DNA of 64,000 nt from positions 248,001 through 312,000 of the IMG/VR virus record IMGVR_UViG_3300011113_000640, one strand, 5' to 3'. The position numbers and the translations under genes were made by a program. Positions within the stretch are counted from its first letter, which is position 1. The number at the start of each line of letters is the position of its first letter. A model generated the notes under the pieces. That model was not told the DNA's origin. It made no database searches and saw nothing but the letters and a program-made list of their open reading frames with translations. Shown piece by piece: positions 30,604-58,154 of the stretch.

Positions 30604-30629
30604 CTTATGTTTGGATTAACAATCAAATC

Positions 30630-30722: not shown

Positions 30723-30802
30723 TGCTCGTCCTGATGTTCGTTGATCCACATGATACCATAACAAACTACCACAGCCAACAAGGCAAAAAATATCAACCAC
30801 AT
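30719..30802 (-). CDS. 27-aa hydrophobic peptide MWLIFFALLAVVVCYGIMWINEHQDEQ
   Basis: Hand-translated; 2 nt after previous stop. Confidence 0.55.
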   Translation of the reverse strand: MWLIFFALLAVVVCYGIMWINEHQDEQ

Positions 30803-30804
30803 GA

Positions 30805-30996
30805 TTAATTATAGCCTTTTATGTGATTGTTGTCAATCGGGGGATTTCCTCGGGCCATGACATTTTCTAACTGCCGGGCACGATCACGTTCGGGCGGCAA
30901 CGGACCACAACCCAGTCTTGCCCACTCGTCTTCGGAGTAGTAATAGCGTTCCACGGGCGGTTTCTTTTGCTGTTCCACGGTCATCGTATTTACCAT
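30805..30996 (-). CDS. Small hypothetical protein
   Basis: Follows tRNA-Ile2. Confidence 0.65.
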   Translation of the reverse strand: MVNTMTVEQQKKPPVERYYYSEDEWARLGCGPLPPERDRARQLENVMARGNPPIDNNHIKGYN

Positions 30997-31000
30997 GTTT

Positions 31001-31075
31001 TGGTAGGCCTTGAAAGAATTGAACTTTCACTCCATCGATTATGAGTCGATTGCTTTACCATTAAGCTAAAGGCCC
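31001..31075 (-). tRNA. tRNA with CAU anticodon, Ile2 (lysidine)-type body
   Basis: GGGCCTT/AAGGCCT-ACCA; ATCGA-CTCATAA-TCGAT resembles bacterial tRNA-Ile2. Confidence 0.85.
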
Positions 31076-32980: not shown

Positions 32981-33422
32981 CGCCGGCTTGTTGTTCGGTG
33001 TAGAATGGCCCTTGATAGGGATATCGTTGTAGCACTATGAGTTTGGGAGCCAACACAGTGCGCCAATGACGTCCGCGGCGCACATTGTACCAACCTGCGG
33101 CAAACCACGATTTGCTCTTGGTTGTTTTGGTGTACACCGGCAACTGTTGCGGAACGTCCCACATGGGATTATGCACACGGCCTGCCACGGGATAACCATG
33201 CACATGGTCTAGCACTGCCCGAGGTCGAGTTTTTTTGATTGCAGGTTCAAACTGTATGTTCACCCGCTGTGCTGCCAGGCGTATGGTCTTGAACTGTGCT
33301 ATCTGATTGTTGATCTTGACCTGATAACCGCCGGCACAGGCTTCCACATTGCCAACCTTTTGATCTCCGTCTTGCAAGATCCAAAACTTTTTGTCTATCA
33401 CGGGTTTAGCTATTAGTTTCAT
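32964..33422 (-). CDS. Hypothetical protein
   Basis: AGGAG SD before ATG 33422. Confidence 0.8.
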   Translation of the reverse strand: MKLIAKPVIDKKFWILQDGDQKVGNVEACAGGYQVKINNQIAQFKTIRLAAQRVNIQFEPAIKKTRPRAVLDHVHGYPVAGRVHNPMWDVPQQLPVYTKTTKSKSWFAAGWYNVRRGRHWRTVLAPKLIVLQRYPYQGPFYTEQQAGDASSQ

Positions 33423-34416
33423 TGAGCACTCCTTTGTATGTTTCATTCATCCAACGCCCAAAGCTGTCGGCGCTTTCACTGCATTTGTTTAATTCGTATT
33501 TGCCACAGAACTGCATGAATCTCACGCCCACTTGCCCCACATCCTTGTGACTGACCTGTTCACGTATGGCTGCATCCACTGTGGCCTTGACGTCTGCAGG
33601 TTGTGCTGTCAAATCAATCAAGGTCCTGTTGCGTTCATAGTCATCCAACACACGATGTTCTACACCGTCGGGATCTGACCAGCGTTGCAACATCATGTTG
33701 TTCCAGTTGTAGCCTTTTTTGTCTTTGTCCGCAAACGCTTCCTGGAGTCCAACCTTGTTCTTAGTGCCCTTAGTTCTGACACCGGGATACGCTGAGAAGA
33801 CGTTATCCGAACTATCTCCTCGCATACACTTTTCAAAGAGTAGCCATTCTGGGTTCGGCGTTGACTTAGGTTCTTTAGTTTTCTTATCGATAACCGCTTT
33901 GCCTTTGGCATCAAAGATTCCTTCCGTGGTGATTAGTTCGTCGGTGATTCCATTGTATTGTTTGACGTTGGCGGCTACCAGTTGGACAAAGTCAGTGTCA
34001 CTGCTGATAACAACATGCTCATCTTGGGGATGTAGTGCGATCCAGCGAGCTATGACGTCGTCGCCTTCGGCTGTAGCACAACGAATCACGCTACAGTTGG
34101 TTTTCTCACTCAAGTATTTAGTCAGATTATCATAGGTTTCCCAGAACATCTTGTCTTCTTCGACTTCCGCTTCTGTGAGTGCGGCACGGGCCACAGCACG
34201 GTTGTTTTTGTAGGGTTTGTACATGTCCTTGCGCCAGCTACGGCCCTCCAGGGCAAACACCATATGATCGGCTTCAAAACGCCGGGCCATTTTGTTGGCG
34301 GCCATTAGGGTAACATGCAGGGCGAAACCTACTTTTTCCCAGGTATCGCTGGCACGGAAAGCACCGTGTCGGGCACGGAAGAAAAGATTGGCAGTATCTA
34401 CGAGAACATATTTCAT
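33406..34416 (-). CDS. rnh: T4-like RNase H / 5'-3' flap exonuclease
   Basis: LVDTAN, SWRKD..YK.NR, EGDD, SSDTDF.QL, GDSSDNV. Confidence 0.92.
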   Translation of the reverse strand: MKYVLVDTANLFFRARHGAFRASDTWEKVGFALHVTLMAANKMARRFEADHMVFALEGRSWRKDMYKPYKNNRAVARAALTEAEVEEDKMFWETYDNLTKYLSEKTNCSVIRCATAEGDDVIARWIALHPQDEHVVISSDTDFVQLVAANVKQYNGITDELITTEGIFDAKGKAVIDKKTKEPKSTPNPEWLLFEKCMRGDSSDNVFSAYPGVRTKGTKNKVGLQEAFADKDKKGYNWNNMMLQRWSDPDGVEHRVLDDYERNRTLIDLTAQPADVKATVDAAIREQVSHKDVGQVGVRFMQFCGKYELNKCSESADSFGRWMNETYKGVLNETNS

Positions 34417-34422
34417 GTTAAT

Positions 34423-34452
34423 ATTATAACATGGATCTGGTCAAAAAGTCAA
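34423..34452 (-). promoter_or_regulatory. Sigma70-type promoter giving a leaderless rnh transcript
   Basis: TTGACT-N18-TATAAT with TG; ATG 6 nt downstream. Confidence 0.7.
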
Positions 34453-37486: not shown

Positions 37487-38242
37487 TTAGGATTTTTTAA
37501 ACACAGGTATGGGCAACATCTTGTGCAGGCTACGGGCCCGGATCCTGCGATACTGTAACAACAGGTTGCGATCTGCGTCATACGCAGGGTCAACGCCCTG
37601 TTCATCCCAGGACATGGCACGCTCTAACTGTGCATAAGTGAGTCCGCCCAGCTGATCTTGATCAGTGCGACCGTCGGACCAAAGTCCATCTGTGGGTGCT
37701 GCATCAATGATATCTTGTATGATACCCAGTTCTCGTCCTAGATCCCACACTTCGGTTTTCATTAGGTCACCAATGGGACTGATGTCCACGCCACCATCGC
37801 CGTATTTGGTATAAAAGCCCACACCAAAGTCTTCGACACGATTGCCGGTGCCCACCACGATGCCGTGATTGTGCTGTGCTATCTGATACAGTGTGGTCAT
37901 TCTCAATCTGGCTCGACTGTTGGCCATGCCCAACAAGTTGTCGTACGGTCCTAGTGTGGTTTCAAACTGATCAAACACTGGCGTGAGATCCACTGTTTCG
38001 TGTTTGACATTGCTGAAGTTTTCGGTGAGCCAAGCACCGTGTCTCAGGCTGAGATCATGCAGTTCGGGCCGTTGTCGTATGGGCATGGTCACTGCCGTGA
38101 CTGGCATGCCAGTTTTAGCACACAGGGTACTAACCACACTAGAATCTATGCCCCCACTGATACCCACTACCAACCACTCGATGTTGTTGTCGGCAGCGTA
38201 GTCTCGTATCCATGTCGATATGTCGTTTGCAAGTTGTTTCAT
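37487..38242 (-). CDS. nadE: NH3-dependent NAD+ synthetase
   Basis: GISGGIDS, NSRARLRM, GFYTKYGDG, PTDGLW. Confidence 0.93.
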   Translation of the reverse strand: MKQLANDISTWIRDYAADNNIEWLVVGISGGIDSSVVSTLCAKTGMPVTAVTMPIRQRPELHDLSLRHGAWLTENFSNVKHETVDLTPVFDQFETTLGPYDNLLGMANSRARLRMTTLYQIAQHNHGIVVGTGNRVEDFGVGFYTKYGDGGVDISPIGDLMKTEVWDLGRELGIIQDIIDAAPTDGLWSDGRTDQDQLGGLTYAQLERAMSWDEQGVDPAYDADRNLLLQYRRIRARSLHKMLPIPVFKKS

Positions 38243-38246: not shown

Positions 38247-38480
38247 TTATTCCTTTAGTTGCCACATTAAATGCTCCTGACGAGCATGCCATTTGTATTC
38301 AATCACAGGTGTTCCTGGACCGGTCCAGGTAGCAATTCCACGATAGGCCAAGGTTCCGGGCCATAGTCTACGTCCTGTGATCTCGCAGGTTTTGGGCCAT
38401 ACCACCCTGCACAGTTTCCACTCGGCCCGAATATAAAAACTGCCATTGGGGCGATTGATACGTTCTGGTATTGGACTCAT
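38247..38480 (-). CDS. Small hypothetical protein
   Basis: ATGA overlap with queE stop. Confidence 0.7.
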   Translation of the reverse strand: MSPIPERINRPNGSFYIRAEWKLCRVVWPKTCEITGRRLWPGTLAYRGIATWTGPGTPVIEYKWHARQEHLMWQLKE

Positions 38481-39352
38481 TTGCCCCAGCCGTTGCCCCA
38501 CAGGTCCACATGCAATCTAGGACTGTAGTTCCAGCCCTGCGCACAACAGATGTCTGCTATGCGTAGTTTATTTTTATCGTAGGGTTCAACCACGCCACCC
38601 TGTGGCATCAAATAAATTGTGCCCTTAAATCCTGCACGGCGATACGCATCCGTGGCACGTATGGCCTCCGCAATGTGCTCATCGGTTTCAACCACAAACT
38701 TCAAATAAGTGTGTCCGATGTCGGCATAGCTCATCACAACTTCGGGACGTATGGCTTCATCCCAAGACTCGCCAGAAGCCGACAACTTGGCACTGACACT
38801 AAATGTCAACGCTGACGGACCTTTCTTGCCCAATTTAGGATTCAGGGTCCAGTCCAACAAAAAGTGTCGGAAGTCTTTGTGCAACTCTTGAGTACCATTG
38901 GTTTCAAAGGTGATGTTCTTCAAGTCCAACATTCTTGGATGGCTCAACAGTTCGCTGTAGGCACGTTGCCAGCCCAGCAAAGGCTCGCCGCCGGTAATTA
39001 CCAAATGCACATCGTTGCCATTGTTCTGCATCCATGCATTGTTGGGTGTCAGTGCCAACATCTTATCCACAAGTTCTTCTGTGGTGTAGTTAGGACTGAG
39101 ATGTTTGAATGCTGGATGCCACGATGCATAACTGTCACAACCTGTTTCTACCAAGGGCAGATCATTGAATGTGGGATACATGTGAACAACTTCGGCCACA
39201 TCGTCGGCACCTGTTGACTTTTCGCCTGGCTTGCATCCAAAACCTGCACAGGTAAAGTTGCAACCATAGGTTCTCAAGAACACACTGGGCACCCCTACAA
39301 AACGACCTTCGCCTTGTAAGCTATAAAATACTTCAGATACTTTTATTTTCAT
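38477..39352 (-). CDS. queE: 7-carboxy-7-deazaguanine synthase (radical SAM)
   Basis: EVFYSLQGEG..G.PSVFLR..GCNFTC...CDS, TGGEP, ETNGT, SPRLH. Confidence 0.93.
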   Translation of the reverse strand: MKIKVSEVFYSLQGEGRFVGVPSVFLRTYGCNFTCAGFGCKPGEKSTGADDVAEVVHMYPTFNDLPLVETGCDSYASWHPAFKHLSPNYTTEELVDKMLALTPNNAWMQNNGNDVHLVITGGEPLLGWQRAYSELLSHPRMLDLKNITFETNGTQELHKDFRHFLLDWTLNPKLGKKGPSALTFSVSAKLSASGESWDEAIRPEVVMSYADIGHTYLKFVVETDEHIAEAIRATDAYRRAGFKGTIYLMPQGGVVEPYDKNKLRIADICCAQGWNYSPRLHVDLWGNGWGK

Positions 39353-40010: not shown

Positions 40011-40559
40011 TTATCTTTGCCACCATGACTCCCAAGGAAATACAATCCAAACGTCTTCTTCGGCTTTGTTTATTGTGATAGCCGAATATGCGACATCTAG
40101 TTTACTTTTACTGCTTTCATTGTCATACAAGCAGGCCACACGCACATTGTTGCCCCAGACTCCAGACCAGCGTTCGTGTTCAGGAAGACACCCACTGATC
40201 CAATCTTGTTGTATCCAGTTGAGTGTGGCACCGGTGTCGTTGATATCATCTACTATCAAGATATTTTTGGCATGCAAGGCAAAATCAAACTCGGCTAATA
40301 AACGTTCTTCTTTGGGCATATAACCAAAAGCATCTTCGGCCATCCACAAGTTGCTTTCTTGTTCGGCACCATCACGTAGACTTACTTTCAGTGTTTCCAT
40401 TCTGCACTCTAGATACTGGCTGATTAAATTTGCTGGAACCAGGCCGCCGCGGGTGAGACCAACCACATAGTCAGGCCTCCATCTGTCCAAGTTAATTTGA
40501 CGCAGGATTTCCTGTGTTTGACGCTCAACGTCCTGCCAAGTATGATAGATTTTTTTCAT
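40011..40559 (-). CDS. Type I purine phosphoribosyltransferase (Gpt-like)
   Basis: RGGLVPA, LIVDDINDTGAT, WIVFPWE. Confidence 0.9.
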   Translation of the reverse strand: MKKIYHTWQDVERQTQEILRQINLDRWRPDYVVGLTRGGLVPANLISQYLECRMETLKVSLRDGAEQESNLWMAEDAFGYMPKEERLLAEFDFALHAKNILIVDDINDTGATLNWIQQDWISGCLPEHERWSGVWGNNVRVACLYDNESSKSKLDVAYSAITINKAEEDVWIVFPWESWWQR

Positions 40560-40594: not shown

Positions 40595-41533
40595 TTAACG
40601 TGTGAGCCATTTGGGATTGTCTTGATACCATTCAACTGTTTCGGTCAGACGTTGTTCAAATGATCTGGGTGCTTGCCATCCTAAACTGTACAATTTTTCC
40701 GGATTCACACTGAAACACAAGTCGTGTCCAGGACGATCAACTGGAACTAAACGATAAGATAATTCGCAACCCATTATCTGGGCAATGTGTTGGGCAAACT
40801 CAAGATTGTTGATAAACTTGTTGCCGGCACTGTTCCATTTTTCACAACGAGCGGACTGTGTTTCTAATATAAATCTAGTATGGCTGGCCACATCGCCGGC
40901 ATAGAACCAACGACGTCCGCCAATCAATTCACTAGGCCCTACGTGTATGTCCAAGGTTTCATTGTTGAGTACTTTGCGTATGATAATCACCGGCAAGCGA
41001 TTGCTTTGACAACGTGGACCAAAGGTATTGTTGATGTGTATGATGCTGGCAGGAACAGCAAACGAGTTGGCATAGGCCAGACACAATTCTTCACCAGCGG
41101 CTTTGCCGGCCGCATAAGGGCTATTGCTGTTGTAGGCATCTGTGAGTTGGCTGTCTTGACCAATGGTCACGGGTCCGTAAACTTCGCCCGAACTGTAATA
41201 CATGAATCGTTGCGTGCCAGTGTGTCGGGCATGTTCCAGCAGATTCAGTGTGCCCAACACATTGTCCATGATGGATGCGGTCGGGTTACTAAGACTGTCA
41301 GCAGCACTGGGATTGGCACCAGCATGCAGTATGATATCAGCGGCCGGCAGACCCGTACAAGGGTTTTTGATATCGTGTTCGATGATTTCGACGCTGTCAA
41401 TCAAGTGTTGTAGCCGATCCATGTTGGTGGTTCCTGGACGCACCACGCATATCACACGATGATCTCTGACAAATTCTTCCGCCAGGTAATGACCGATGAA
41501 TCCATTGGCCCCGGTGATCAATACTGTTTTCAT
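40595..41533 (-). CDS. NAD-dependent epimerase/dehydratase (RmlB-like)
   Basis: TGANGFIG, SSGEVYG, YAAGK, DRPGHD. Confidence 0.9.
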   Translation of the reverse strand: MKTVLITGANGFIGHYLAEEFVRDHRVICVVRPGTTNMDRLQHLIDSVEIIEHDIKNPCTGLPAADIILHAGANPSAADSLSNPTASIMDNVLGTLNLLEHARHTGTQRFMYYSSGEVYGPVTIGQDSQLTDAYNSNSPYAAGKAAGEELCLAYANSFAVPASIIHINNTFGPRCQSNRLPVIIIRKVLNNETLDIHVGPSELIGGRRWFYAGDVASHTRFILETQSARCEKWNSAGNKFINNLEFAQHIAQIMGCELSYRLVPVDRPGHDLCFSVNPEKLYSLGWQAPRSFEQRLTETVEWYQDNPKWLTR

Positions 41534-42213
41534 TGTGTCCACTTGTATATGATATCGGTGTCTTTGACTAGCACTTTTTCGTATTCCAACTCTGCGAAAA
41601 AGACATCCATCATGTCTTGGCTTATGCCATATCTTTTGGCCCAGGGTTCGCACCATTCAATCATGACGACGGGATGGAACTTTTCAATGGTGTTTTTGGC
41701 TCCCATCAAGGCAAAATATTCATAGCCTTCAATATCCAATTGTATAAGATCACAGGCCGGCAAGTTTATTTCATCAATGATCACAGTGGGCACATTGCCG
41801 GCCTGTGTGCCCACATGGATGGCACCTGCATCTTGACCGCGATTTATTTCAACAAACTTGTGTTCGTTGCCCACGCAGGCCTGTGTTTTTATCACATTGG
41901 AGTCGCAATTCAAGGTCAGGCACATGAAATTCATTGGATCCGGTTCAAAAGTGTACACCGTACCAAATCTTTTGCTGAACTGGCGCACAAGTTGGCCACA
42001 GTTACCACCGGCCTGCACCATCACACCAGGAGAATCCACATGGGTCATCAGCAGGTCAAGAAATTCTGGTTCTATGCGGTACTGGTGCATGTAATTCCAA
42101 CAGGCCCGGTCGTAACGAGGCCACCACAGATCTTTTAGTTCGACATGCGGCGAATCGTGTCTGAGCTCGATTAATTCACCCAGATTACCAGGAATGGTTT
42201 TATAATCGTCCAT
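41530..42213 (-). CDS. FkbM-family methyltransferase
   Basis: QAGGNCG, FEP, LDIEGYE. Confidence 0.88.
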   Translation of the reverse strand: MDDYKTIPGNLGELIELRHDSPHVELKDLWWPRYDRACWNYMHQYRIEPEFLDLLMTHVDSPGVMVQAGGNCGQLVRQFSKRFGTVYTFEPDPMNFMCLTLNCDSNVIKTQACVGNEHKFVEINRGQDAGAIHVGTQAGNVPTVIIDEINLPACDLIQLDIEGYEYFALMGAKNTIEKFHPVVMIEWCEPWAKRYGISQDMMDVFFAELEYEKVLVKDTDIIYKWTQ

Positions 42214-42692
42214 CAGGTCCTTCGCACATTCAAATAAGCTGGTTGATTGCTGTACAAAAATTCACTCCAAACAGATTCTAATTCTTCAACAGTGTTAGGC
42301 TGATAAATTTTGATGTTAGGGAACACTTCAACAGCACGAACAGCATCTTCGGCCCAGTGACTGAAACCCAAATGACCATAGTCCTGATCACGGCCGACTC
42401 CTACCAGTTTGACCGGTGCAAGTTCATGATCAAGATAGTTGCGTAGCCACTCATAAGGGCGGAAGATCACAAACGGAGTAATGCTGTAACACACAGGTAT
42501 CTTGCCGCAATGAGTAAGTCCTACAGCAGTTCCCAGCATGAGTTGTTCTGCAGCACCTACATTAAGAGCACGGTCTGGTGCTACTTCTCTTGATCGATTA
42601 AGCACACCAAACCCAAGATCACCTGATAACAACCATACATCGGGATCTTTGGCCAATGAGTCAGCCATGAGTTCACCAAATCTATTTCTCAT
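42213..42692 (-). CDS. Split transketolase, pyrimidine-binding subunit
   Basis: GDLG, NVGAAEQ, RPYE, G.SH; start at ATGA overlap. Confidence 0.9.
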   Translation of the reverse strand: MRNRFGELMADSLAKDPDVWLLSGDLGFGVLNRSREVAPDRALNVGAAEQLMLGTAVGLTHCGKIPVCYSITPFVIFRPYEWLRNYLDHELAPVKLVGVGRDQDYGHLGFSHWAEDAVRAVEVFPNIKIYQPNTVEELESVWSEFLYSNQPAYLNVRRT

Positions 42693-43297
42693 AGTTGCTC
42701 TAGATCCTCGGGTTTGAGCACATAGTAGTGCGTGAGTATGCCCTTGGCAAACGACCAATCCGGTGGCGCAGTTTCACGTATGTTGATTCTTGGCAAAAAT
42801 GCCCGCAACCTACGGATGATATATTCTTTGTCGATAAAGTCATAGGCAATCATGCCATTGACATTGACGTATACTTCTAAATTGTCTAACTTGGCTTCGT
42901 AGATAAAACGTAATGCTTCCCATATACTTCCTTCACCACACTCACCGTCACTGATCAAACAATGCACTCGACGAGTACGATCAGCCAGAGCATATCCACA
43001 AGCCACAGTAAGGCCCATGCCTAAACTACCAGAGCTACAAGGCAGTCCGTCTTCGATGTTTCTGTGTGGATGGACTCCGTGTTTGTGAAATAAGTGTTCA
43101 GCATCTTTGCCAAGATATTTTTCTAAAATCACGTACCAAGCCAGGGCCGCGTGACCAGAACTTAAGATAAACGGTTCGTTGGGTTGTCGATTTTTGTAAA
43201 TTTCTTCAATGATATTGACAGCATTAAGATTGGAACTTAGATGTCCAATCTTTTCTCGATAGCTGATATCAATGATTCTTTGTTCAACGTCGTTCAT
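42689..43297 (-). CDS. Split transketolase, ThDP-binding subunit
   Basis: GH, SSGH, GSLGMGL, SDGECGEGSIWEA. Confidence 0.92.
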   Translation of the reverse strand: MNDVEQRIIDISYREKIGHLSSNLNAVNIIEEIYKNRQPNEPFILSSGHAALAWYVILEKYLGKDAEHLFHKHGVHPHRNIEDGLPCSSGSLGMGLTVACGYALADRTRRVHCLISDGECGEGSIWEALRFIYEAKLDNLEVYVNVNGMIAYDFIDKEYIIRRLRAFLPRINIRETAPPDWSFAKGILTHYYVLKPEDLEQL

Positions 43298-44613
43298 AGA
43301 TATAAACTCATAAATCCATCAACCTTTTCTCCAATGTACTCAATCTGTTCAGGAGTAATAACTGGACTGCATCCATGGAAGTAGGTATTCTTCATTGTGA
43401 ATGTGGCCACAGGATAATTGTCACGTGCTGCCACAGGATCCATCAAATGACTATACGCAGGTTGCAACATGATGTTGCCAGCAAAGTATGGGCGTGTCTG
43501 TATCAAGTTTTCTTCAAGATAATCAACAATGTCCATGCGTGAGAACGGAGCATCCGCACGTATGGTCAATGGGAAAGCAAACCAACTGACATCGGCTTTG
43601 TCTCTGGCACGTGGCAAGTGGAAAAACTGTTCATACTTTTCATAGATGGCAAACAATAGATTGTAGTTGCGTTGACGTAAAGCATGTATCTCTGGCAATT
43701 TTTTAAGTTGCTCAAGTCCCATGGCTGCTTGTAGTTCAATGGGTTTTAAGTTATAACCAATTTCATCATACACATACTTGTGATCAAAAATCTGATCTGG
43801 CATTTCTGGTATCCACTCATTGAATCGCTTGCCACAGGTGCCACATTTTAATTTGTTGGCCTCGGGTCCTACGCAATAGCAACCGCGTCCCCACTCACGC
43901 AGGCTACGCACAATGATTTCTTGTTGTGGATCATTCATGGCCACAAAGCCACCTTCGCCCATGGTCATGTGATGTGCCGGATAAAAACTGCATGACGCCA
44001 TTTCACCAAAGCTACCTAACGGCTTGCCGTCATAGGTTGTGCCTAGTCCATCACAGCAGTCTTCAAGCAGAACAAGATTGTACTTGTTAACTAGTTCCAT
44101 AACCCGGTCCATATTAGGTGGATTGCCTAAAACATGAGCAAAGGTAATAATCTTAATATCTGTATCTGCCGCAAGCAAACGCTCTGCATGGTCCAAATCA
44201 ATGTTTAGTGTATCAATTTCAATATCACAGAACACTGGCGTAAATCCATTTTGCAAGGTTGGATTCAGTGTGGTTGGAAATCCTGCGATTGGCATCAGTA
44301 CTTTGGTGCCGGGTGGAAAATTATGTCCACGCTTGCTTTTCATGGCGGTCATCATCAAGAGATTTGCGCTACTACCACTGTTGGTAAGCACGCCGCGTGT
44401 CTTGCCAAACTCCCTAGGAAATTTTTGTTCAAAGCGCAGGCTTTTGTTGCCCATGACCAGCCACCCATTAAGCAAGGCTTCTGCGGCCGCCACATACTCG
44501 TCGGATGAAAAATGCGGGCCAGCATAATTAACAAAGTCTTTGCCGGCCACCCAGGTTTTGTCTGCCTGTTTGGCGTCAATGTACTGTTTAATCAAGTTTA
44601 AAATTTCATTCAT
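43294..44613 (-). CDS. rfbH: NDP-4-keto-6-deoxyglucose 3-dehydratase (RfbH/DdhC, E1)
   Basis: SGSSAN, EDCCD, SFYPAHHMTMGEGG (His in place of Lys), WGRGCYC..CG.RF, DHKY. Confidence 0.93.
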   Translation of the reverse strand: MNEILNLIKQYIDAKQADKTWVAGKDFVNYAGPHFSSDEYVAAAEALLNGWLVMGNKSLRFEQKFPREFGKTRGVLTNSGSSANLLMMTAMKSKRGHNFPPGTKVLMPIAGFPTTLNPTLQNGFTPVFCDIEIDTLNIDLDHAERLLAADTDIKIITFAHVLGNPPNMDRVMELVNKYNLVLLEDCCDGLGTTYDGKPLGSFGEMASCSFYPAHHMTMGEGGFVAMNDPQQEIIVRSLREWGRGCYCVGPEANKLKCGTCGKRFNEWIPEMPDQIFDHKYVYDEIGYNLKPIELQAAMGLEQLKKLPEIHALRQRNYNLLFAIYEKYEQFFHLPRARDKADVSWFAFPLTIRADAPFSRMDIVDYLEENLIQTRPYFAGNIMLQPAYSHLMDPVAARDNYPVATFTMKNTYFHGCSPVITPEQIEYIGEKVDGFMSLYL

Positions 44614-45340
44614 AGTCGACTCCGAGTTCTTGGCAAAGCACTTTCATGATTTCAATGACTTTCAAGCTACCTCGACTGGCAGCAAAATGCAAAATGTTTG
44701 CATCGGCAATCGGCACTCCGGAATTCCAGAGTCTGGTAGCTTCTAGTTCAGCAGGATGGTCGCTTCTTAAGTTATGACACATGTAATTCATTTCTGGGTG
44801 TAGTCGATCTGTTTCTGGAATATCTTGTGCCCAAAACATTGCGTTGTGTCTTAGTTGGTCAAATCCCCAGTGCCGATCCGGATGTGTTTCCCTTGCTTGA
44901 AAATACTTTTCACCCAGGTCCCAAATTTCTTTTGACATGGTATGCGGATAATATTGCACGTCATCATTGAAATGATGTCGAAATTCTCTATGATTCCGCG
45001 GTTCTGTGTAGTTGAACAATCTGTATTCTTTGTAGCGGTCTCCAAACAAACTGGTGGGTCGTATCATAAAAGTATCAGCACCGGACCAAAAAACGTTGCA
45101 GGGTTCGCTGTCCCATAATGCTTTGATCTCGTTCCAGTTGGCCTCAGTACAGGTGTCGCTGTCGTCGGCAGGATCGGTCCATAACACAGCTTCGAAAGGC
45201 TCCAGACAAAATTTGCGAAATGAAGACAGCCTTATCTTGTACATTTCACCATAGGCCTTGTACAGGTCTTGATTCTTTTCTATGTGCCAGCCATTACGGA
45301 TAGGCCTTACTGAAGAAACCAAATAATTTTTAACTGTCAT
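44606..45340 (-). CDS. Hypothetical protein, possible glycosyltransferase
   Basis: GADT, GFDQ and ILHF..SRG resemble GT8/GT34-like motifs; sugar-cluster context. Confidence 0.5.
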   Translation of the reverse strand: MTVKNYLVSSVRPIRNGWHIEKNQDLYKAYGEMYKIRLSSFRKFCLEPFEAVLWTDPADDSDTCTEANWNEIKALWDSEPCNVFWSGADTFMIRPTSLFGDRYKEYRLFNYTEPRNHREFRHHFNDDVQYYPHTMSKEIWDLGEKYFQARETHPDRHWGFDQLRHNAMFWAQDIPETDRLHPEMNYMCHNLRSDHPAELEATRLWNSGVPIADANILHFAASRGSLKVIEIMKVLCQELGVDYE

Positions 45341-45960
45341 TTCGATCTGCCTAATATAGCACCGCTGTTGTGACGATGCCCTTCACTGTGTAATAGCCGA
45401 TAACCTTCGGATAACAAATAAGGAATAGCCGCTGAACACTTGCCAATAAACACACCTTCATCTGGCTCGTACCAGGTGTCGTCGCATACAATAATACTAT
45501 TATCGCACATCAATGGCATTAACCGAATAGCTTGTTTTAAGTGGGCTTGTTGACTATTTAGATTGGTCATTTCGATTCCCATTTTTTGTAAATAACGTTC
45601 TTTTTGTGCCGGCACAAAAGGTTTGGCTTTTCTATTGACCCAATAGTCCCAATCAAAATTATCTAAGTAAACTAAACTTACTCGAGACTCGGGTTCTAGA
45701 TTTCTAAAATTGTCCAGAAAGTCTTCACCTTTGGCCTGTATGACTCGAACATGATTGGGCATGTTCACAAATCTTTCTTTGAGGCCGTCGATTTGATCTT
45801 GGTCATAGTCTACAGCATAAAATCTTGTGGCACGGTCTTTGGCCAGGTCTGCAAAAAACTTGGTGCTGCCTTCGCCACGATCAACACCAATCTCAATCCA
45901 AACACCTGGATCAATTTGATGTATAAAATTTTCTACATTTCGATAGTATGTGCCCATCAA
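45337..45960 (-). CDS. Class I SAM methyltransferase
   Basis: EIGVDRGEGST, YLDNFDW, CDDTW. Confidence 0.78.
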   Translation of the reverse strand: MMGTYYRNVENFIHQIDPGVWIEIGVDRGEGSTKFFADLAKDRATRFYAVDYDQDQIDGLKERFVNMPNHVRVIQAKGEDFLDNFRNLEPESRVSLVYLDNFDWDYWVNRKAKPFVPAQKERYLQKMGIEMTNLNSQQAHLKQAIRLMPLMCDNSIIVCDDTWYEPDEGVFIGKCSAAIPYLLSEGYRLLHSEGHRHNSGAILGRSK

Positions 45961-46647
45961 TTAACTCGCTTTAGTAAATCTGCCTAATATAGCACCACTG
46001 TTTTGTCTATAGCCTTGATTGTTCAACACTTCATAACCGTGCAACAATAGGTAAGGTATCACAGCCGAACACTTGCCAACGAATACTCCTTCATTGGGAT
46101 GGTACCAGGTATCGTCACACACTATGATACTTTTTTCAGTCATCAACGGCATCAGTCTCATGGCCTGAAGCAAGTGGGCTTTTTGGCTGTTGATATTGGT
46201 CATCTCAGTGCCCATGTAGTCTCTATAGTGTTGCTTTTGTGCAGGTACAAAAGATTCTTCTTGACCGCCAACCCAATAGTCCCAGTCAAAGTTGTCAAGA
46301 TACACCAACGAAAATTTCTCGCCAGGATTGTTGCGTGCGAATTGTTCCAGAAAGTTTTCACCAAAAGCATGTACTAGTTCTACGTGATCTGGCAAAGGCC
46401 CTTCGGCTAATCGAAATTGTCCGTCGGCACCTAATACCGCTTGTCCTTGCGATGACAACACCGCACGAGCCCTTGCGATTTGATTTTCATCTGCGTCAAC
46501 ACCGTAAAACTTAACGCCTTTTGTTTTTGCTATGTCAGCAAAGAATTTAGTACTACCTTCTCCGCGGTCAACGCCAATCTCAACCCACGCACCAGAGGGA
46601 TCGACTGCATCCATAAATCGTTCTACTTCTTTGTAATATGTTCCCAT
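45961..46647 (-). CDS. Class I SAM methyltransferase (tandem duplicate)
   Basis: Same motifs as 45337-45960. Confidence 0.78.
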   Translation of the reverse strand: MGTYYKEVERFMDAVDPSGAWVEIGVDRGEGSTKFFADIAKTKGVKFYGVDADENQIARARAVLSSQGQAVLGADGQFRLAEGPLPDHVELVHAFGENFLEQFARNNPGEKFSLVYLDNFDWDYWVGGQEESFVPAQKQHYRDYMGTEMTNINSQKAHLLQAMRLMPLMTEKSIIVCDDTWYHPNEGVFVGKCSAVIPYLLLHGYEVLNNQGYRQNSGAILGRFTKAS

Positions 46648-46650
46648 AGA

Positions 46651-47601
46651 TCACCAAATAAAATTTAACATGTAATACTCTATAACTCTTTGTAATTCTT
46701 GATCAAAGTTGGCCAGGGGTTGCCACCCCAAGGCCTTGAGTTTAGAGTCATTGATTGCATAACGCACATCTTGGCCTTGTCGGTGGCTGCCAGTGATGTA
46801 ATCTTCCCAACGATCTTCAGCTCCACCACCGGGATAGTAATGCAACAGCTTTTTGATAACTTCCTTGTTGGGCATTTCTGCATTGCCTGAAATGTTATAA
46901 ATTTCGTTGATGCTACCGTGATCGATCACAGTCATTACTGCACGAGCAGTGTCTTCGACATGCAACCAAGTCCTCTGCGGCTCACCACGATCATGCAGGT
47001 CAATTTTCCTGCCTATTTTGAGATACTTGATTGACTTGGGGATTAATTTTTCAACATATTGACCAATACCATAGTTGTTGGTAGGACGCACAATTACATA
47101 TCGGATGCCATAGGTTCTTGCCCAGGCCAGGATCAACATGTCGGCCGCTGCCTTTGAAGCTGAATAAGGATTGCTGGGTTTCAGCAGATCAGTTTCGGCG
47201 TGGGCACCCGAATCGATATCACCATACACTTCGTCGGTTGAAAAATGCAACAATGTTGGTTGCTTTTGAACAGGCTGTTGTCGGATCAGTTCCAACAGAC
47301 GGTGTACTCCGTTGATGTTACTGTGCAGGAATACCTCAGAACTCATGATCGAATTGTCCACATGAGTTTCAGCTGCTGTGTTTATGATATAATCGCAGTC
47401 ATACAGTCGGTCAAGATCATTGATGTCTTTGTGTATGAACTTAAATGTATCGTATTTTTGAAACTCACTTAGAAAATCAAAATTGCTGGCATAGGTACCT
47501 TTGTCCACACCAATCACATGCCATCCACGTGCCAGACATTGTCGTGTGACATGTACTCCTATGAATCCCAAACAACCTGTGACATATACAATTTTTTTCA
47601 T
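46651..47601 (-). CDS. rmlB: dTDP/NDP-glucose 4,6-dehydratase
   Basis: TGCLGFIG, AAETHVDNSI, STDEVYG, PYSASKA, NNYG..Q..EKLIP. Confidence 0.93.
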   Translation of the reverse strand: MKKIVYVTGCLGFIGVHVTRQCLARGWHVIGVDKGTYASNFDFLSEFQKYDTFKFIHKDINDLDRLYDCDYIINTAAETHVDNSIMSSEVFLHSNINGVHRLLELIRQQPVQKQPTLLHFSTDEVYGDIDSGAHAETDLLKPSNPYSASKAAADMLILAWARTYGIRYVIVRPTNNYGIGQYVEKLIPKSIKYLKIGRKIDLHDRGEPQRTWLHVEDTARAVMTVIDHGSINEIYNISGNAEMPNKEVIKKLLHYYPGGGAEDRWEDYITGSHRQGQDVRYAINDSKLKALGWQPLANFDQELQRVIEYYMLNFIW

Positions 47602-48461: not shown

Positions 48462-48911
48462 CTAACCTTCGTAGATGGCACTGTTGGCACCGTGTTCGGC
48501 ACATTCTACACGCACACAGTAACAACGGTCATTGGTCTTTTTGCGGATTAGTTGATCAGCAAAGTTAAAAGCATGTTCGGCAAACTTCTCTGCACCCACT
48601 CCATTGAATATTCTAATCTCTACTAGGTCCAATGCTTGTAATTCTTCAAACTTAGCCAAGTGTGGATCTCGTTTATCCAGGGCCAACTTGTGATCAAAAT
48701 GATCTTCCAACCAGGCTTTTAGTTCTTTGAGTCCGCCAAAGTCCACTGCCCAGTTTTTATCGTCCAGACTGTCACAACCAAAAGTGAATGTGAACGCCAG
48801 ACTGTAACCATGTAGCAAGTGACAGTGACTGTGATCAGCATTGGGCTGTCTAAATACAGCACTCAAGCCAATGTTGTGCCCGTAGTGTTTTGTTGAATAA
48901 TACTTTGCCAT
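48462..48911 (-). CDS. queD: 6-carboxy-5,6,7,8-tetrahydropterin synthase
   Basis: CHLLHGY (CxxxHG), VDFG, FDH, GAE. Confidence 0.9.
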   Translation of the reverse strand: MAKYYSTKHYGHNIGLSAVFRQPNADHSHCHLLHGYSLAFTFTFGCDSLDDKNWAVDFGGLKELKAWLEDHFDHKLALDKRDPHLAKFEELQALDLVEIRIFNGVGAEKFAEHAFNFADQLIRKKTNDRCYCVRVECAEHGANSAIYEG

Positions 48912-48920
48912 TATAATTCT

Positions 48921-48981
48921 CCTATGTTAATTATAGCATAGGCGGCAGAGTTTGTAAAGCGGGAGTGACGCCAAGACCGCT
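48921..48981 (-). promoter_or_regulatory. queD control region: TTTACA-N17-TATAAT promoter inside an SD-sequestering hairpin, plus upstream stem-loop
   Basis: -35 at 48953-48958, -10 at 48930-48935; CCTATG/CATAGG stem covers the AGG of AGGAG. Confidence 0.75.
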
Positions 48982-48986
48982 GGATA

Positions 48987-52747: not shown

Positions 52748-52950
52748 TTGGCTTCGGGTTTAGTTTGCGACTGGATAGGTGTGCATCGCATCTCAGGTGG
52801 CTCGCACAATTCCCATCGGCCATTCCTGGTATCCATCCTGTACATTTGGCCGTTGAGCACTATGGGAGTAAAGGCACCATTGTCCACGCTGGGGTGGACG
52901 AATGTGTATCCTGTGAGAACTACTAGCACGCTTGTGAGTATGATTTCCAT
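52744..52950 (-). CDS. Small protein with N-terminal TM
   Basis: Overlaps both neighbours. Confidence 0.7.
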   Translation of the reverse strand: MEIILTSVLVVLTGYTFVHPSVDNGAFTPIVLNGQMYRMDTRNGRWELCEPPEMRCTPIQSQTKPEAK

Positions 52951-53789
52951 TATCTAGGTGCGAACTCTTGTTGCAGTTTGATATTGTCCATGAACTCTTT
53001 CTTGGTGCCAGGATCAGTCTTAAACGCACCTCGGAGCACCGTGGTCTGTGTCAGGCTCGAATGTGCCATGATGCCGCGATTTTCACAGCAACCATGAGTG
53101 GCTTGGATATAAACACCAATATGTTCAGAATCTGTAGCACGAGCAATCTCTCGGGCAATGTCGTTGGCTAGTTCCTCTTGAAGAGTACCCCGGCGAGCAC
53201 ACCATTGAGCAATCCTAGTATACTTACTAAGACCAATGAGCTTGTTAGCCGCAATGATTCCGATGTAAGCAACTCCAGACACAGGCTGATGATGATGACT
53301 ACACATACTGCGCAATTCACTGCGTACAACCAACATACCTTCATATCTATCCTCACTATCGTTAGGGAAAGCAGTGGCATCAGGGCGGGGTTCATACCTA
53401 CCTGCCATGATTTCGTTGAAATACATCTTGGCCAATCTACGTGCTGTGCCAGCACTGTTGGGATCTGTTTCTCTATCAATCAACAAGGTATCCAGCACTC
53501 GTTCAAATGCTTCTGTGGCTTCATCAATCAACTGTTTGCGTTCTTGCTCTGATTCGATAAACTCACTGACGTTGTCTCCGGCCCAGAATCGTTTACCGCT
53601 GGCCCGCATGCTGTCTCGGATAACCTGGCTCAGTGGGCGACCTTCGTCGGGATCTACTACAGCATCCTCATAACCAGGATGATATGGCGCCTCTGCCACA
53701 ATACGGCTTTGTTGTAAGGCATCGAATGTTTTTTGGCTGGCATTATTTTTCACTGCGTTCTCTCTATCTTCACTGGTAAATGTTGTCAT
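52950..53789 (-). CDS. folE: GTP cyclohydrolase I
   Basis: SMCSHHH.P, GLSK..R, LQE, H.C...RG. Confidence 0.95.
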   Translation of the reverse strand: MTTFTSEDRENAVKNNASQKTFDALQQSRIVAEAPYHPGYEDAVVDPDEGRPLSQVIRDSMRASGKRFWAGDNVSEFIESEQERKQLIDEATEAFERVLDTLLIDRETDPNSAGTARRLAKMYFNEIMAGRYEPRPDATAFPNDSEDRYEGMLVVRSELRSMCSHHHQPVSGVAYIGIIAANKLIGLSKYTRIAQWCARRGTLQEELANDIAREIARATDSEHIGVYIQATHGCCENRGIMAHSSLTQTTVLRGAFKTDPGTKKEFMDNIKLQQEFAPR

Positions 53790-53800: not shown

Positions 53801-53828
53801 ATTATACAGGTTATTTAGATTTTTGCAA
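53801..53828 (-). promoter_or_regulatory. Promoter TTGCAA-N16-TATAAT with nested TCTAAATA
   Basis: Near copy of 61768-61796. Confidence 0.65.
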
Positions 53829-54402
53829 GATCAAATGGAATTTTTCTCAAGTCTGGATAAATTCCTGGTTGCGATTTGGGGTCAATAGTTGGTAATAGTT
53901 CCAAGCCCTTGGCACACAATTCCAAAGTAGGGCAATAATGCCACCCTAAAATTAATTCTGTTTCTTCTTGCCAAGGTATGTGTAAGTCTCGCCCATCTGC
54001 TCTTTGTCGACTAAACACTTTGTATGCTTCTGCATCGTCCAGCAATATTGCTCCCGCCTTGCCCAACTGCAAAGGTTTGGTCCAACCAAAGCTCAAACAT
54101 TGAAATTGACCTGCACGATACATGTTGCGTTCCAAGCGTCTGGCACTGTCCCATATACGAGAATTGGCAAATTGATATTCGCCTCGCCAGGTTTGATCAG
54201 TAAGTTTGTAATCAACACCCAGATGAGTCAGCATCATAGGAACACTGAGATAAGTGTATGCTGTAAAACTGGTTTGTTTTACCCGATCATATCTGAAACA
54301 TAGTTCAAGAGCATGTGTACAACCATCTGTGAGTACCACATAAGGTGCGCCAGTGTACTCGGCCAAGGCTGATTCAAAGTCAAACAAGGCTTGAAAACTC
54401 AT
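53815..54402 (-). CDS. Short DegT-family PLP-dependent enzyme (195 aa)
   Basis: DGCTHAL, WDSAR, SFGWTKPL..GKAGAIL. Confidence 0.8.
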   Translation of the reverse strand: MSFQALFDFESALAEYTGAPYVVLTDGCTHALELCFRYDRVKQTSFTAYTYLSVPMMLTHLGVDYKLTDQTWRGEYQFANSRIWDSARRLERNMYRAGQFQCLSFGWTKPLQLGKAGAILLDDAEAYKVFSRQRADGRDLHIPWQEETELILGWHYCPTLELCAKGLELLPTIDPKSQPGIYPDLRKIPFDLAKI

Positions 54403-54761
54403 TCGCTTAGATGATCCTTTTTGATTTCTCGCACCGAACATCCTAGTTGTTCAGCTATGGAATTTTTTAGCTGTATTCTCTGATTATTTAAATTTCTTAT
54501 CATGATAGCTCTACGGCCTAATTCTTCCAACGACAATTCAGATTCTCTGCCTGATTTTAATTCTGCTTCTAAATTCCAAATTTCACTGTGTATGCCATGC
54601 AGTTGAGCTAATTCTTGTTCGACCATGCCAAGATCGTATCCGCTGTCGTTGAGCTGACGATCATAGAAATCAAATTCTTCCTGATTCGCTCCATTGGTCT
54701 TGGCTAATTTTAACTTGGCAATGGCAAATCTGTCTACCAGTTCGATCACAGGAAATATCAT
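54399..54761 (-). CDS. Helical hypothetical protein
   Basis: ELVDR..I..LK, IW.LE, N..R..LKN.I; ATGA overlaps. Confidence 0.75.
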   Translation of the reverse strand: MIFPVIELVDRFAIAKLKLAKTNGANQEEFDFYDRQLNDSGYDLGMVEQELAQLHGIHSEIWNLEAELKSGRESELSLEELGRRAIMIRNLNNQRIQLKNSIAEQLGCSVREIKKDHLSE

Positions 54762-55786
54762 AGATACATGGTCTCAAGTCGTTTAGGATCATCTAAAATC
54801 TTTTGTATTTCAATATTGTTGACATTGGGCCTGCATGGTCGGCATAGGCCAACATTGGTTCGATTGTAAATCTCTTGGTGTCGTTTGCCCAACCACAGGT
54901 CTCGGAAATCGCCGGAATCCCAAGAACCTAGTTCAAACTGTGGATCACCTTTGCCTTCACAACACACATAAATCTTGCCATTGGCACAAAACACTGGAAA
55001 ATGAAACATTTGGTGGCATTTTTTATAAGTTCTTGGCAGGGTCTTGTTGGTGTTAACCCAATATTTTACATTGTGCTTTTGTCCAAGATGTTCTAACATG
55101 GTCAAGGTAGCATCCGTCAACGTATGTGCCTGATTGTTTACTATCACTGGTCTAAAATACAACATTCTGCCGCCCAGGCGTTTGACCAGGGCAAACAAGT
55201 CATCCATGGCTTGATAATTGTCATTGAGCGGATTGATCAAGCATTTGAAATCTACATTGGCTCCGGCTTCGATCAAGGCCCGGGCATTGTCACACACCTT
55301 GTTGAACAAACTCCTGGCTGTAAGACTGCGTCGGATCTGTTCATACAGATCCTCAGTGCCAGCATCTATATCTATGCCAATCCAGGCTATCTTGCGTAGT
55401 TTTTCCACGGACACACTGCTCAACAATTTGTCTAGATTGCTTCCATTGGTAGTGATACTACAAAAAAATCCCAAGTCAATGGTGTGTTCTATCACATGTT
55501 CATAACCAATCAATACCGTGGGTTCGCCGCCGCCTGGATAGGTAATGGTGTGCGTGGTACCATAACTTCGAGGACTGTGCGCTCGCCACCCGGCCAATTT
55601 ATCCAAGAGGTCAATGTATTCAGTGTATTTTTTTTGCACCGGTTCTTGAGCTCTAAATTCTGCCGAGTTGCAATAGTAACAATCTTGATTGCACACATTG
55701 GTCAGATCGATGTCTACCTGCGCAGGCAAGATACCCATGCTGTCTTGATTTTTCATCCAGTGGACGAGTTCGGCAAATTGATACAT
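54758..55786 (-). CDS. Radical SAM/SPASM protein
   Basis: CNQDCYYC, GGGEP, C-terminal C..YVCC..C..CRP. Confidence 0.9.
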   Translation of the reverse strand: MYQFAELVHWMKNQDSMGILPAQVDIDLTNVCNQDCYYCNSAEFRAQEPVQKKYTEYIDLLDKLAGWRAHSPRSYGTTHTITYPGGGEPTVLIGYEHVIEHTIDLGFFCSITTNGSNLDKLLSSVSVEKLRKIAWIGIDIDAGTEDLYEQIRRSLTARSLFNKVCDNARALIEAGANVDFKCLINPLNDNYQAMDDLFALVKRLGGRMLYFRPVIVNNQAHTLTDATLTMLEHLGQKHNVKYWVNTNKTLPRTYKKCHQMFHFPVFCANGKIYVCCEGKGDPQFELGSWDSGDFRDLWLGKRHQEIYNRTNVGLCRPCRPNVNNIEIQKILDDPKRLETMYL

Positions 55787-55789
55787 GTT

Positions 55790-56740
55790 TTACTTAGTGC
55801 TATACCAAGCCCAGGCATGACGAACCATGTCCTCAAGCCCATATTGTGGTTGCCAAGAACTGACCTTTGCAAATTTGGTACTGTCGGCTGTAAGTATGGC
55901 CGGATCTCCTGGCCTTAAAGGTCCTACTCCTAAGTTTACACGTTGACCCGTGATCTGTTCGGCCATGTTGATGATCTCTCGATTGCTGTGGCCGGTGTTG
56001 GTACCAAGATTGTATAGGCCAGTGGGTATTTTCGTGTCGCAGACCAGGATATGTGCATCGGCCAAGTCTTCCACGTGTATGTAATCTCTGATACAGGTAC
56101 CATCCACAGTAGGGTAGTCCGTGCCATTGAGGGTAAAGTGTGTGTTGTCTCTAATGCTTTCTAAGACTCTAGCGACGATGTGTGTGGCTCCAGGTCTTTG
56201 TCCATGTCGTGCCTGGCTGTCTGCTCCGCAGGCGTTGAAATAACGAAAGCTCACATAGTCCAAGTCATAGGCACGATGATAACTCTGCAACATCCAATCC
56301 ACCATGAGCTTGCTTTGACCATAGGGGCTAATGGGCTCTGCAGGATCTATTTCCTGGCAGGGTGTTATTACAGGATTACCATATGTGGCCGCACTTGAAC
56401 TAAAGATCAATCTGGTTTTAATTTGTTTTTGTACCAACCAATCGCAAAGTATCTTGGTCCGAACAAAGTTGTTCTCGTAGTATTCCTCAGGATCCAACAT
56501 GCTAGGACCCACAAGACTGGTGCCGGCACAGTGTATGATGGCATCGGGCTGGAATGTTTCTATGGCACGCAGAGACACTTCACCGGCAAAATCTGCCACC
56601 AGCCACTTGGCACCGCAGTCGATCAAGGGATTGGGATCAAGACTACGATCAATAGCAAACACACTGTGCCCACGATCCAATAAACCAAGAACTGTTTGGC
56701 CACCTATGTAGCCAGCACCACCGGTGACTACTACTCTCAT
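55790..56740 (-). CDS. galE: UDP-glucose 4-epimerase
   Basis: TGGAGYIG, SSSAATYG, YGQSK, RYFN, DGTCIRDYIHV.DLA. Confidence 0.93.
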   Translation of the reverse strand: MRVVVTGGAGYIGGQTVLGLLDRGHSVFAIDRSLDPNPLIDCGAKWLVADFAGEVSLRAIETFQPDAIIHCAGTSLVGPSMLDPEEYYENNFVRTKILCDWLVQKQIKTRLIFSSSAATYGNPVITPCQEIDPAEPISPYGQSKLMVDWMLQSYHRAYDLDYVSFRYFNACGADSQARHGQRPGATHIVARVLESIRDNTHFTLNGTDYPTVDGTCIRDYIHVEDLADAHILVCDTKIPTGLYNLGTNTGHSNREIINMAEQITGQRVNLGVGPLRPGDPAILTADSTKFAKVSSWQPQYGLEDMVRHAWAWYSTK

Positions 56741-57936
56741 ACTTTTCTCACGTGATATTTGGCCTGGCTCACATGGTCTCTGTAGCGATTGCCTGCACGG
56801 TTCCAAGACTCACCCTTGCCCTCCAGGATATCTACGATACGATCCACAGTACCGTCGGTCCAGTCTGAGATAAGACCCTGGTTGTGATGCGGTGCTCCCA
56901 GCAAGTTTTCTAACTTGTGGAAGGCATCATCAATGCTCCAAGGCACATACAGGCGATTAGGATCGTCAGCAAAGGTTTCAGGGAAACTGCGATAAGCAGG
57001 ATACAGCACGTTGCAACCAAGAGTATCGGCTTCTGATACTGTGTTAGATACCCAGTCTTGTAAAGCACAATTAAACAACACACGAGTATCGTTGAGAAGA
57101 TTGTAATAATCATTTTTCTTCAAGTCCTCATAGATTTTGAGTCGGCCTTGTGATTCTAACTCTCTGGCCCGCAGGATATAACGCACATTGTTGCTTCGTA
57201 GTGGTCCGCCTTGAAACACAGCGAACTCGATATCCTTGTGTCGTCCTTGAGCCAGATACATTTCAATCAAGTCCATGTAAAAGTCTGGTTGTTTCTCTTG
57301 ATCAAATCTCGCGGCAAAGCCCACACGCATTTTTCTTTGGTCAAATGGTTTCATATTTTCTGCGCCACCAATGCGTTCCAGCACTTCTTGTTTGCCAAAT
57401 GCTAATCCACTGATGTTGTAGATTGGAGCAGTCCATCCTGCAATACGCATGTGGGCAACCATTTCTTCGTTGGTGGCCAATACCCCTGTCACGAATTGGT
57501 TAACCATCTTTTCATACGTCGACATCCACTCCGCCATGCCCCATACATGAACAAAGTCATCCGGATCAATGGCTTGAGCAAGACAACGTACATAAATGCG
57601 AGGACGCTGAGACTCAGGCACTTGATCCAGAATATAAGGTAAGCTCTCGATACCGGGCTGAAACATGTCTTCAAAGTAGATAATATCTTCACGGGTGACT
57701 TCTCCATTCCTCATCATTTGCACCAGATTCATCATCTGGCTCATGCTAAAGTAACTGCGGCCATGTGCATCCAATACCTGGCCCACGCTGATGCTTTGCG
57801 TGTTGTCAATGGTGGATCCCGGAACATACACAACATCTAGACCGCGGCGTTCAAATACCCTGCGATTCCATTCTGTGAGTTGTAGGGTGTAACGAGCTTC
57901 GTAGCTCTCTAGACCCATGTAGAACAATTTTCTCAT
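56737..57936 (-). CDS. GT-B (GT4-like) glycosyltransferase
   Basis: FAARFDQEKQP, LQDWVSNTVSEA..G, YP..RSFPE. Confidence 0.8.
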   Translation of the reverse strand: MRKLFYMGLESYEARYTLQLTEWNRRVFERRGLDVVYVPGSTIDNTQSISVGQVLDAHGRSYFSMSQMMNLVQMMRNGEVTREDIIYFEDMFQPGIESLPYILDQVPESQRPRIYVRCLAQAIDPDDFVHVWGMAEWMSTYEKMVNQFVTGVLATNEEMVAHMRIAGWTAPIYNISGLAFGKQEVLERIGGAENMKPFDQRKMRVGFAARFDQEKQPDFYMDLIEMYLAQGRHKDIEFAVFQGGPLRSNNVRYILRARELESQGRLKIYEDLKKNDYYNLLNDTRVLFNCALQDWVSNTVSEADTLGCNVLYPAYRSFPETFADDPNRLYVPWSIDDAFHKLENLLGAPHHNQGLISDWTDGTVDRIVDILEGKGESWNRAGNRYRDHVSQAKYHVRKV

Positions 57937-58154
57937 ATGTTGCGACCCAGCCTGCGAGCATCTTCCACCCACATGTTCTTGGCATTTTTGCCCTGGCTGA
58001 ACTTGTTGTACTGTTGCCAGGCATAGGCCTTGAAGTTGTAGAGATCTTCCTCGCGGAATCTGTAGCCATAGTCGCGACAGAACTCCAGGAAGTTGCTCAA
58101 CTCTTCTAGTGTTTGTAATGCACGTGGATTGGGACGGTATTCACGCTTGCCCAT
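57933..58154 (-). CDS. Small hypothetical protein
   Basis: AAGGA SD; ATGA overlap with GT gene. Confidence 0.8.
   Translation of the reverse strand: MGKREYRPNPRALQTLEELSNFLEFCRDYGYRFREEDLYNFKAYAWQQYNKFSQGKNAKNMWVEDARRLGRNI

Follow-up and report, generated by a model that had tools for sequence, protein, structure and literature searches.

What controls the translation of a QueD-like gene in a freshwater jumbo phage, when its short leader contains at once an RNA pseudoknot, a hairpin over the ribosome-binding site and a promoter within that hairpin? We addressed this question in a window of 64,000 nucleotides (bases 248001-312000 of the 320.5-kb IMG/VR virus record IMGVR_UViG_3300011113_000640, estimated to be 93% complete), near-identical DNA to which occurs in lake and river metagenomes from 12 studies. 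An earlier note, made from the sequence alone, had described a hairpin hiding the start of the Shine-Dalgarno, a promoter with its -10 box in the hairpin loop, and an upstream stem whose loop could pair with bases overlapping the 5' arm of the hairpin, and had proposed either a timing control like that of phage T4 or a new pterin/deazaguanine-responsive element. We confirm here that the observation is real, all of these elements being present on the minus strand. The interpretation given in the note is only partly supported, both of its proposals surviving in modified form.

Elements of the leader

The locus lies in the 75 nt between the stop codon of a 74-aa ORF (48989-48987) and the ATG (48911) of a 149-aa PTPS-family gene. 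Its features, in window coordinates, are as follows.

48977..48981, minus strand: 5' strand of stem P1 (AGCGG)
48973..48976, minus strand: loop L1 (TCTT), with its second and third bases, C and T, invariant
48969..48972, minus strand: 5' strand of stem P2 (GGCG), inside the P1 loop
48963..48968, minus strand: loop L2 (TCACTC; family consensus TCA-N1-3-C), with an invariant final C
48958..48962, minus strand: 3' strand of P1 (CCGCT), the last T of which is also the first base of the -35 hexamer
48945..48957, minus strand: loop L3 (TTACAAACTCTGC; family consensus NNANAAAYTCTGC), always 13 nt
48941..48944, minus strand: 3' strand of P2 (CGCC), or P2', shared with the sequestering helices
48943..48947, minus strand: TGCCG (end of L3 plus start of P2'), predicted to pair with TGGCA of the start region (48906-48910)
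48937..48942, minus strand: 5' anti-Shine-Dalgarno arm of the hairpin (CCTATG), the TG of which is the extended -10 TG
48921..48926, minus strand: 3' arm of the hairpin (CATAGG), overlapping the Shine-Dalgarno
48930..48958, minus strand: putative internal sigma-70-type promoter, TTTACA (48958-48953)-N17-TGcTATAAT, with the -10 (48935-48930) in the hairpin loop
48919..48923, minus strand: Shine-Dalgarno AGGAG, 7 nt before the ATG
48462..48911, minus strand: QueD-like T-fold protein of 149 aa

The hairpin has a 10-nt loop (48936-48927), its 3' arm covers AGG of the Shine-Dalgarno, and the last two C of P2' are also the first two bases of its 5' arm. A 6-bp inverted repeat in this geometry around a -10 is not rare, since it was found at about 6% of random positions, and we also found that this phage does not commonly place -10 boxes inside inverted repeats (11% of promoters against 6% of random sites). 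The hairpin alone would therefore mean little, and it is the promoter statistics and the comparison with relatives that lift the observation above chance.

The promoter is an 11/12 match to the sigma-70 consensus plus the TG. Matches of 11/12 or better number 55 in the genome, 44 of them on the main coding strand, against 4-8 in first-order Markov simulations (about 9-fold enrichment), and they share a TTGAC(A/C)-N17-TGCTATAAT form upstream of 15 or more genes, a class that the promoter of the leader fits. Read-through transcripts would come from promoters at 49959-49931 and 52312-52284, and no convincing terminator was found between these and the leader. A second promoter-in-hairpin lies at 34414-34433 (minus strand), where the inverted repeat CATGTTA/TAACATG encloses a TATAAT (34428-34423) belonging to a TTGAC-N17 promoter. 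There, the 3' arm holds the ATG of ORF 34416..33406, only 6 nt after the -10, so that the short transcript would be leaderless and the start codon would be paired on read-through RNA.

A conserved pseudoknot with interchangeable platforms

To ascertain whether these structures are maintained, we used the protein to retrieve 80 related loci (hereafter designated by L numbers), out of at least 596 in IMG/VR. All 80 carry the element upstream of the gene, two of them cut by contig ends, and a covariance model built for it (R1) found a single copy in the phage genome (63 bits). A degenerate pattern built from the invariant bases retrieved 80 more viral loci and, of 84 further loci tested with R1 (those 80 plus four from the scan of bacterial genomes described below), 77 scored 31-67 bits. 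The element thus precedes QueD-like genes in more than 150 related phage contigs.

Covariation among relatives, a check proposed beforehand, was found for both pseudoknot stems. P1, over 109 distinct sequences, was paired in 99.1% of 545 cells with 53 double changes, four of its five pairs showing compensatory changes (AGCGG/CCGCT, ACCGG/CCGGT, AGAGG/CCTCT, AGTGG/CCACT, TGCGG/CCGCA and ATCGG/CCGAT); none of 500 shuffles scored as high, slid controls were 47-62% paired, and a first analysis of 54 sequences also supported the stem. P2, over 101 distinct sequences and five pairs, was 82% paired against 52% in shuffles and 31-52% when the partner columns were slid, with 172 double-change cells against 72 in shuffles and a covariation of 0.76 against 0.26 (0 of 500 shuffles as high). 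Examples are GGCG/CGCC, GGTG/CACC, GATG/CATC, GGCT/AGCC, GGCAT/ATGCC, GACGC/GTGTC and ATGACAT/ATGTCAT, and the many G-U pairs in P2 fit the mRNA strand only. Because the sequences come from related phages, part of this signal is shared ancestry. The unpaired bases are also strongly conserved: the C and U of L1, UCA-N-C of L2 and, in L3 (NNANAAAY followed by UCUGC), the A at positions 3, 5 and 7 and the TC.GC bases, which are invariant in 101-109 distinct sequences. The element is therefore a genuine H-type pseudoknot RNA. In contrast, the stem of the hairpin showed no compensatory change, only C to U: among the 63 distinct leaders that carry it (type a, the type of the window), the 3' arm is invariant and the 5' arm is CCTATG in 56 and TCTATG in 7.

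The aptamer ends 21-42 nt before a start codon. The downstream gene is a QueD-like protein belonging to one of five subfamilies, 33-52% identical to the protein of the window and all with an invariant HC-x3-HGY motif, the exceptions being three loci with an extra copy of the element. In L006 (2137-2187) and L009 (2132-2180), a second complete copy of aptamer plus hairpin lies about 800 nt upstream of the QueD-like copy and precedes a 235-aa viral class I SAM-methyltransferase-like gene, whereas in L107 (6-54) a degenerate copy precedes a 309-aa methyltransferase-like gene. In L038, L070 and L075 (aptamer near 2744-2797) the aptamer lies about 200 nt before the conserved QueD-like domain and the gene appears to carry an N-terminal extension, and in L061 the start also lies upstream of the usual MAKYY start.

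The hairpin is only one of at least three expression platforms. Type a makes up 63 of 132 distinct leaders, while in the other types P2' and the bases that follow it form a 6-9 bp helix with the start codon. This helix covaries with the start region (ATGGCA with TGCCAT or TGTCAT, ATGACA with TGTCAT, ATGACTT with AAGTCAT, CAATG with CATTG, and AGATG with CATCT), so that the loop strand of P2 mimics the start region and both compete for P2'. In partition-function folding of the 132 leaders, forbidding the four P2' bases from pairing, as pseudoknot formation would, lowered the cost of opening the -13 to +6 region by a mean of 3.6 kcal/mol (2.4 for type a and 4.7 for the rest); the drop exceeded 0.5 kcal/mol in 127 leaders and the cost never rose by more than 0.5 kcal/mol. 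In the window, the minimum-free-energy fold has the hairpin stacked on the TGCCG/TGGCA helix, which hides the AUG. The predicted opening cost is 9.4-10.5 kcal/mol on long RNA (5' ends at 48981 or further upstream), 4.8 with the pseudoknot formed and 2.6 on RNA starting at 48922-48926, although these energies ignore pseudoknot and tertiary terms.

Only type a carries a consensus phage promoter within its platform. The -10 is TATAAT (41), TAAAAT (14) or another TAnnnT in 61 of its 63 leaders, with spacers of 17-18 nt, and -35-like variants in L3 (TTGATA, TCGACA and TAGACA) were seen only in type-a leaders. A strong promoter 5-9 nt before P1 was found in 26 of 66 non-a leaders but in only 3 of 63 type-a leaders, the two arrangements being complementary.

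No Rfam 15 family matched the element in searches at gathering score and at E up to 10 on the window, the 101-nt leader, the relative L040 and 18 other loci. In particular, the preQ1-I model (RF00522, gathering score 39 bits) gave no hit at the leader at E up to 10 in 101-nt, 2-kb or whole-genome searches, nor in L040, nor in the 18 other loci at gathering score. BLASTN of the locus against GenBank phages gave no match, and full-text literature searches found no description of this motif. An exact-pattern scan of 185,579 genomes, one per bacterial and archaeal species, gave four hits, one of which looks like chance. The other three are real and lie on contigs in MAG bins (two short, one of 183 kb) before the same QueD-like gene arrangement, so we read them as phage DNA, which is an inference. 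Motif-bearing contigs (L090, L091 and L093) are binned in three Bacteroidota MAGs (Haliscomenobacter, an uncultured Bacteroidetes bin and Chitinophagales), two of which hold two such contigs each, and this is either a hint of the host or binning contamination. A covariance-model scan of 150 further genomes of one of those orders gave only weak hits, the best of which (26.7 bits) lies in a signal-peptide coding region and lacks the motif.

A putative translational ON switch and its alternatives

We believe, with reasonable but not high confidence, that the most plausible explanation is a translational ON switch built on a pseudoknot aptamer of about 41 nt (P1, L1, P2, L2, L3 and P2'). In this view, when the pseudoknot is not formed, P2' and its flanks pair with the ribosome-binding region, in the window through CCTATG with CATAGG of the Shine-Dalgarno and TGCCG with TGGCA of the start region, and in other lineages through the helix covering the AUG. 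When it forms, that strand would be taken away and the ribosome site would open. A small molecule docking among the invariant bases of L1, L2 and L3 would stabilise the pseudoknot, an inference drawn from the invariant loops, the small size, the metabolic target genes and the two competing conserved folds. Its most likely nature is a compound with a guanine-like face from the GTP-to-pterin-to-7-deazaguanine route served by the FolE, QueD-like and QueE-like genes of the phage. Transcripts starting at the internal promoter (near 48923) would lack the aptamer and both anti-RBS strands and would be translated constitutively, so that only read-through transcripts from 49959 and 52312 would be under switch control. 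While the two conserved and mutually exclusive structures, the gene association and the promoter consensus are established by our analysis, binding of a ligand and its effect on expression, the identity of that ligand, the activity of the promoter and the position of the transcript start are inferred from sequence, no RNA-seq run having been found to hold this locus. It should also be considered that ON logic is unexpected for a biosynthetic gene if the ligand is an end product.

With regard to the earlier note, its structural reading was right in every detail. Its T4-like proposal fits the sequence, but the upstream promoters are of the same sigma-70 type as the internal one, so that a temporal difference is not shown. 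The proposal of a new responsive element is the stronger one, as the pseudoknot is conserved, covaries in more than 100 distinct sequences and matches no Rfam family. The note missed that P2' toggles between the pseudoknot and an RBS-sequestering helix, which gives ON rather than OFF logic, that the hairpin is one of at least three platforms, and that the gene, which it called queD, is QueD-like and not a certified QueD.

Like preQ1-I riboswitches (RF00522, types I-III), the element is an H-type pseudoknot of similar size with a 5-bp P1 (5-6 bp in preQ1-I), a short P2 between the P1 loop and the 3' tail, an A-rich L3 (docking on P1 in preQ1-I) and an L2 ending in C next to P1; both lie beside the RBS, the preQ1-I switches acting on translation and this element being predicted to do so, and both are linked to the GTP-to-7-deazaguanine pathway (PMC10622847; PMC3273816). 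It differs in the lack of a match to the covariance model, in an L3 fixed at 13 nt with a YUCUGC block, in a longer L1 (4-9 nt), in a P2' that lies 17 nt or more upstream of the Shine-Dalgarno and competes with an anti-RBS helix, in the predicted ON instead of OFF logic, and in having been found only in contigs that are viral or that we read as phage DNA. It would work like a preQ1-I-type pseudoknot but is not a member of that family. In T4 genes e, soc, 49 and I-TevI, the Shine-Dalgarno or AUG is likewise sequestered on long transcripts and a promoter in or over the 5' part of the structure gives transcripts without the inhibitory strand (PMC3014915). Here, however, that strand is also part of a conserved pseudoknot, so that long transcripts would be conditionally rather than permanently silent, and no switch of promoter class is evident. 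In translational ON riboswitches and other small pseudoknot riboswitches (adenine add, guanidine-III, SAM-II and SAM-V), as is proposed for this element, a ligand-stabilised fold withdraws a strand from an anti-RBS helix and the aptamers are compact pseudoknots with loop-helix triples; none of these families matched in Rfam, and the conserved loop sequences differ.

It remains possible, although on balance we do not consider it more likely than not, that this is a previously undescribed riboswitch class confined to environmental phages, in which a preQ1-I-like pseudoknot was re-tooled to turn translation on in response to a pathway intermediate such as dihydroneopterin triphosphate, CPH4, CDG or preQ0, and which in one lineage yields one regulated and one unregulated mRNA from a single leader. 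If confirmed, it would be a class found so far only in phages, and an abundant one, since the regulated protein family has more than 2,500 clusters in metagenomes. It would also show a small natural pseudoknot related in shape to preQ1-I but with opposite logic and probably a different ligand, which is useful for understanding how tiny aptamers change specificity, and the ligand would report what these QueD-like enzymes actually make. A promoter embedded in an expression platform is an unusual way to combine constitutive and conditional expression.

Among the alternatives, a switch operated by a protein survives best, although we consider it unlikely. The QueD-like protein itself or a dedicated translational regulator could bind the pseudoknot, as T4 gp32 and gp43 bind their own leaders, and the motif is tied almost entirely to one protein family; moreover, phages use RNA operators, including a pseudoknot at T4 gene 32 (PMC3014915). 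Against this, the element also precedes an unrelated methyltransferase-like gene and is kept unchanged across the five QueD-like subfamilies. The geometry makes stabilisation of the pseudoknot activating, and positive autoregulation by the gene's own product would be unusual, whereas small size and invariant loops are typical of metabolite aptamers. Less likely still is a ligand-independent device, in which temperature, Mg2+, co-transcriptional folding or ribosomes terminating on the upstream ORF would set the balance between the two structures. Two competing structures are all that such a device needs, and the stop codon of the upstream ORF is only 5 nt from P1 (48982-48989), so that a terminating ribosome would cover and melt the P1 5' strand on read-through transcripts. 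However, many relatives have a promoter directly before the aptamer and no upstream ORF, so coupling cannot be general, and about 15 unpaired positions are invariant, more than a simple competing helix requires.

Three other readings are very unlikely. A purely T4-type hairpin with an incidental pseudoknot matches the geometry of the T4 genes and has a second example at 34414-34433, but as the sole explanation it is contradicted by the strong covariation of the pseudoknot and by its presence in lineages lacking the hairpin and internal promoter altogether. An ordinary preQ1-I riboswitch repressing queuosine-precursor synthesis would fit the topology, the QueD-like target and an L3 that starts like the B. 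subtilis tail AUAAAAAACUAA (PMC3273816), but is opposed by the absence of any RF00522 hit at the leader, the 13-nt L3 with its UCUGC block, a P2' that does not include the Shine-Dalgarno, the ON logic and the lack of a detectable QueC, TGT or other preQ1-using gene in the phage. Finally, a DNA operator for a repressor covering the promoter would account for a perfect and conserved 6-bp palindrome centred on the -10, but no second copy occurs at any other promoter in the 320-kb genome, and the constraints imposed by the Shine-Dalgarno on the 3' arm, and by P2 and the TG motif on the 5' arm, already explain its conservation.

The QueD-like gene and its genomic setting

The gene product matched Pfam PTPS (3.6e-14) and PHROG 2389, 'QueD-like' (2e-39), but scored only 35.4 bits against the QueD equivalog (TIGR03367), below the cut-off of 89.25 bits. 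A search of the PDB with the single sequence gave no hit, whereas a profile search did hit QueD2 and QueD. The predicted structure (pLDDT 94.8) has the T-fold of QueD/PTPS enzymes (COG0720), its best structural matches being QueD2, QueD and PTPS (3jyg, QueD2 7v0f and E. coli QueD 4ntk). The catalytic Cys, the Asp-His pair and the C-terminal Glu are invariant. However, in the profile alignment to E. coli QueD, the His of AAHRL and the second His of HGH are replaced by F/Y and Y, and these are two of the three zinc ligands of QueD.

The phage also carries FolE (52950-53789) and a QueE-like radical SAM gene (38477-39352), together with a NadE-like amidating enzyme (37487-38242) and a type I phosphoribosyltransferase (40011-40559). 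No QueC or TGT/DpdA was detected in the genome, the apparent QueC hit being NadE, so that the end product of the pathway, and with it the ligand, cannot be named from the gene content; a base-exchange-independent route to a 7-deazapurine nucleotide may be speculated. The regions 40595-47601 and 53815-57972 hold a large block of sugar-nucleotide modification genes, with three 4,6-dehydratase/epimerases, DegT aminotransferases, FkbM and other methyltransferases, split transketolase-like genes, glycosyltransferases and a radical SAM/SPASM gene (54758-55786), the best hit of which, below threshold, was to prokaryotic viperins. Seven tRNAs and a permuted tmRNA of betaproteobacterial type (29949-30305, tag peptide ANAANDEVFALAA) are encoded at 22341-31075.
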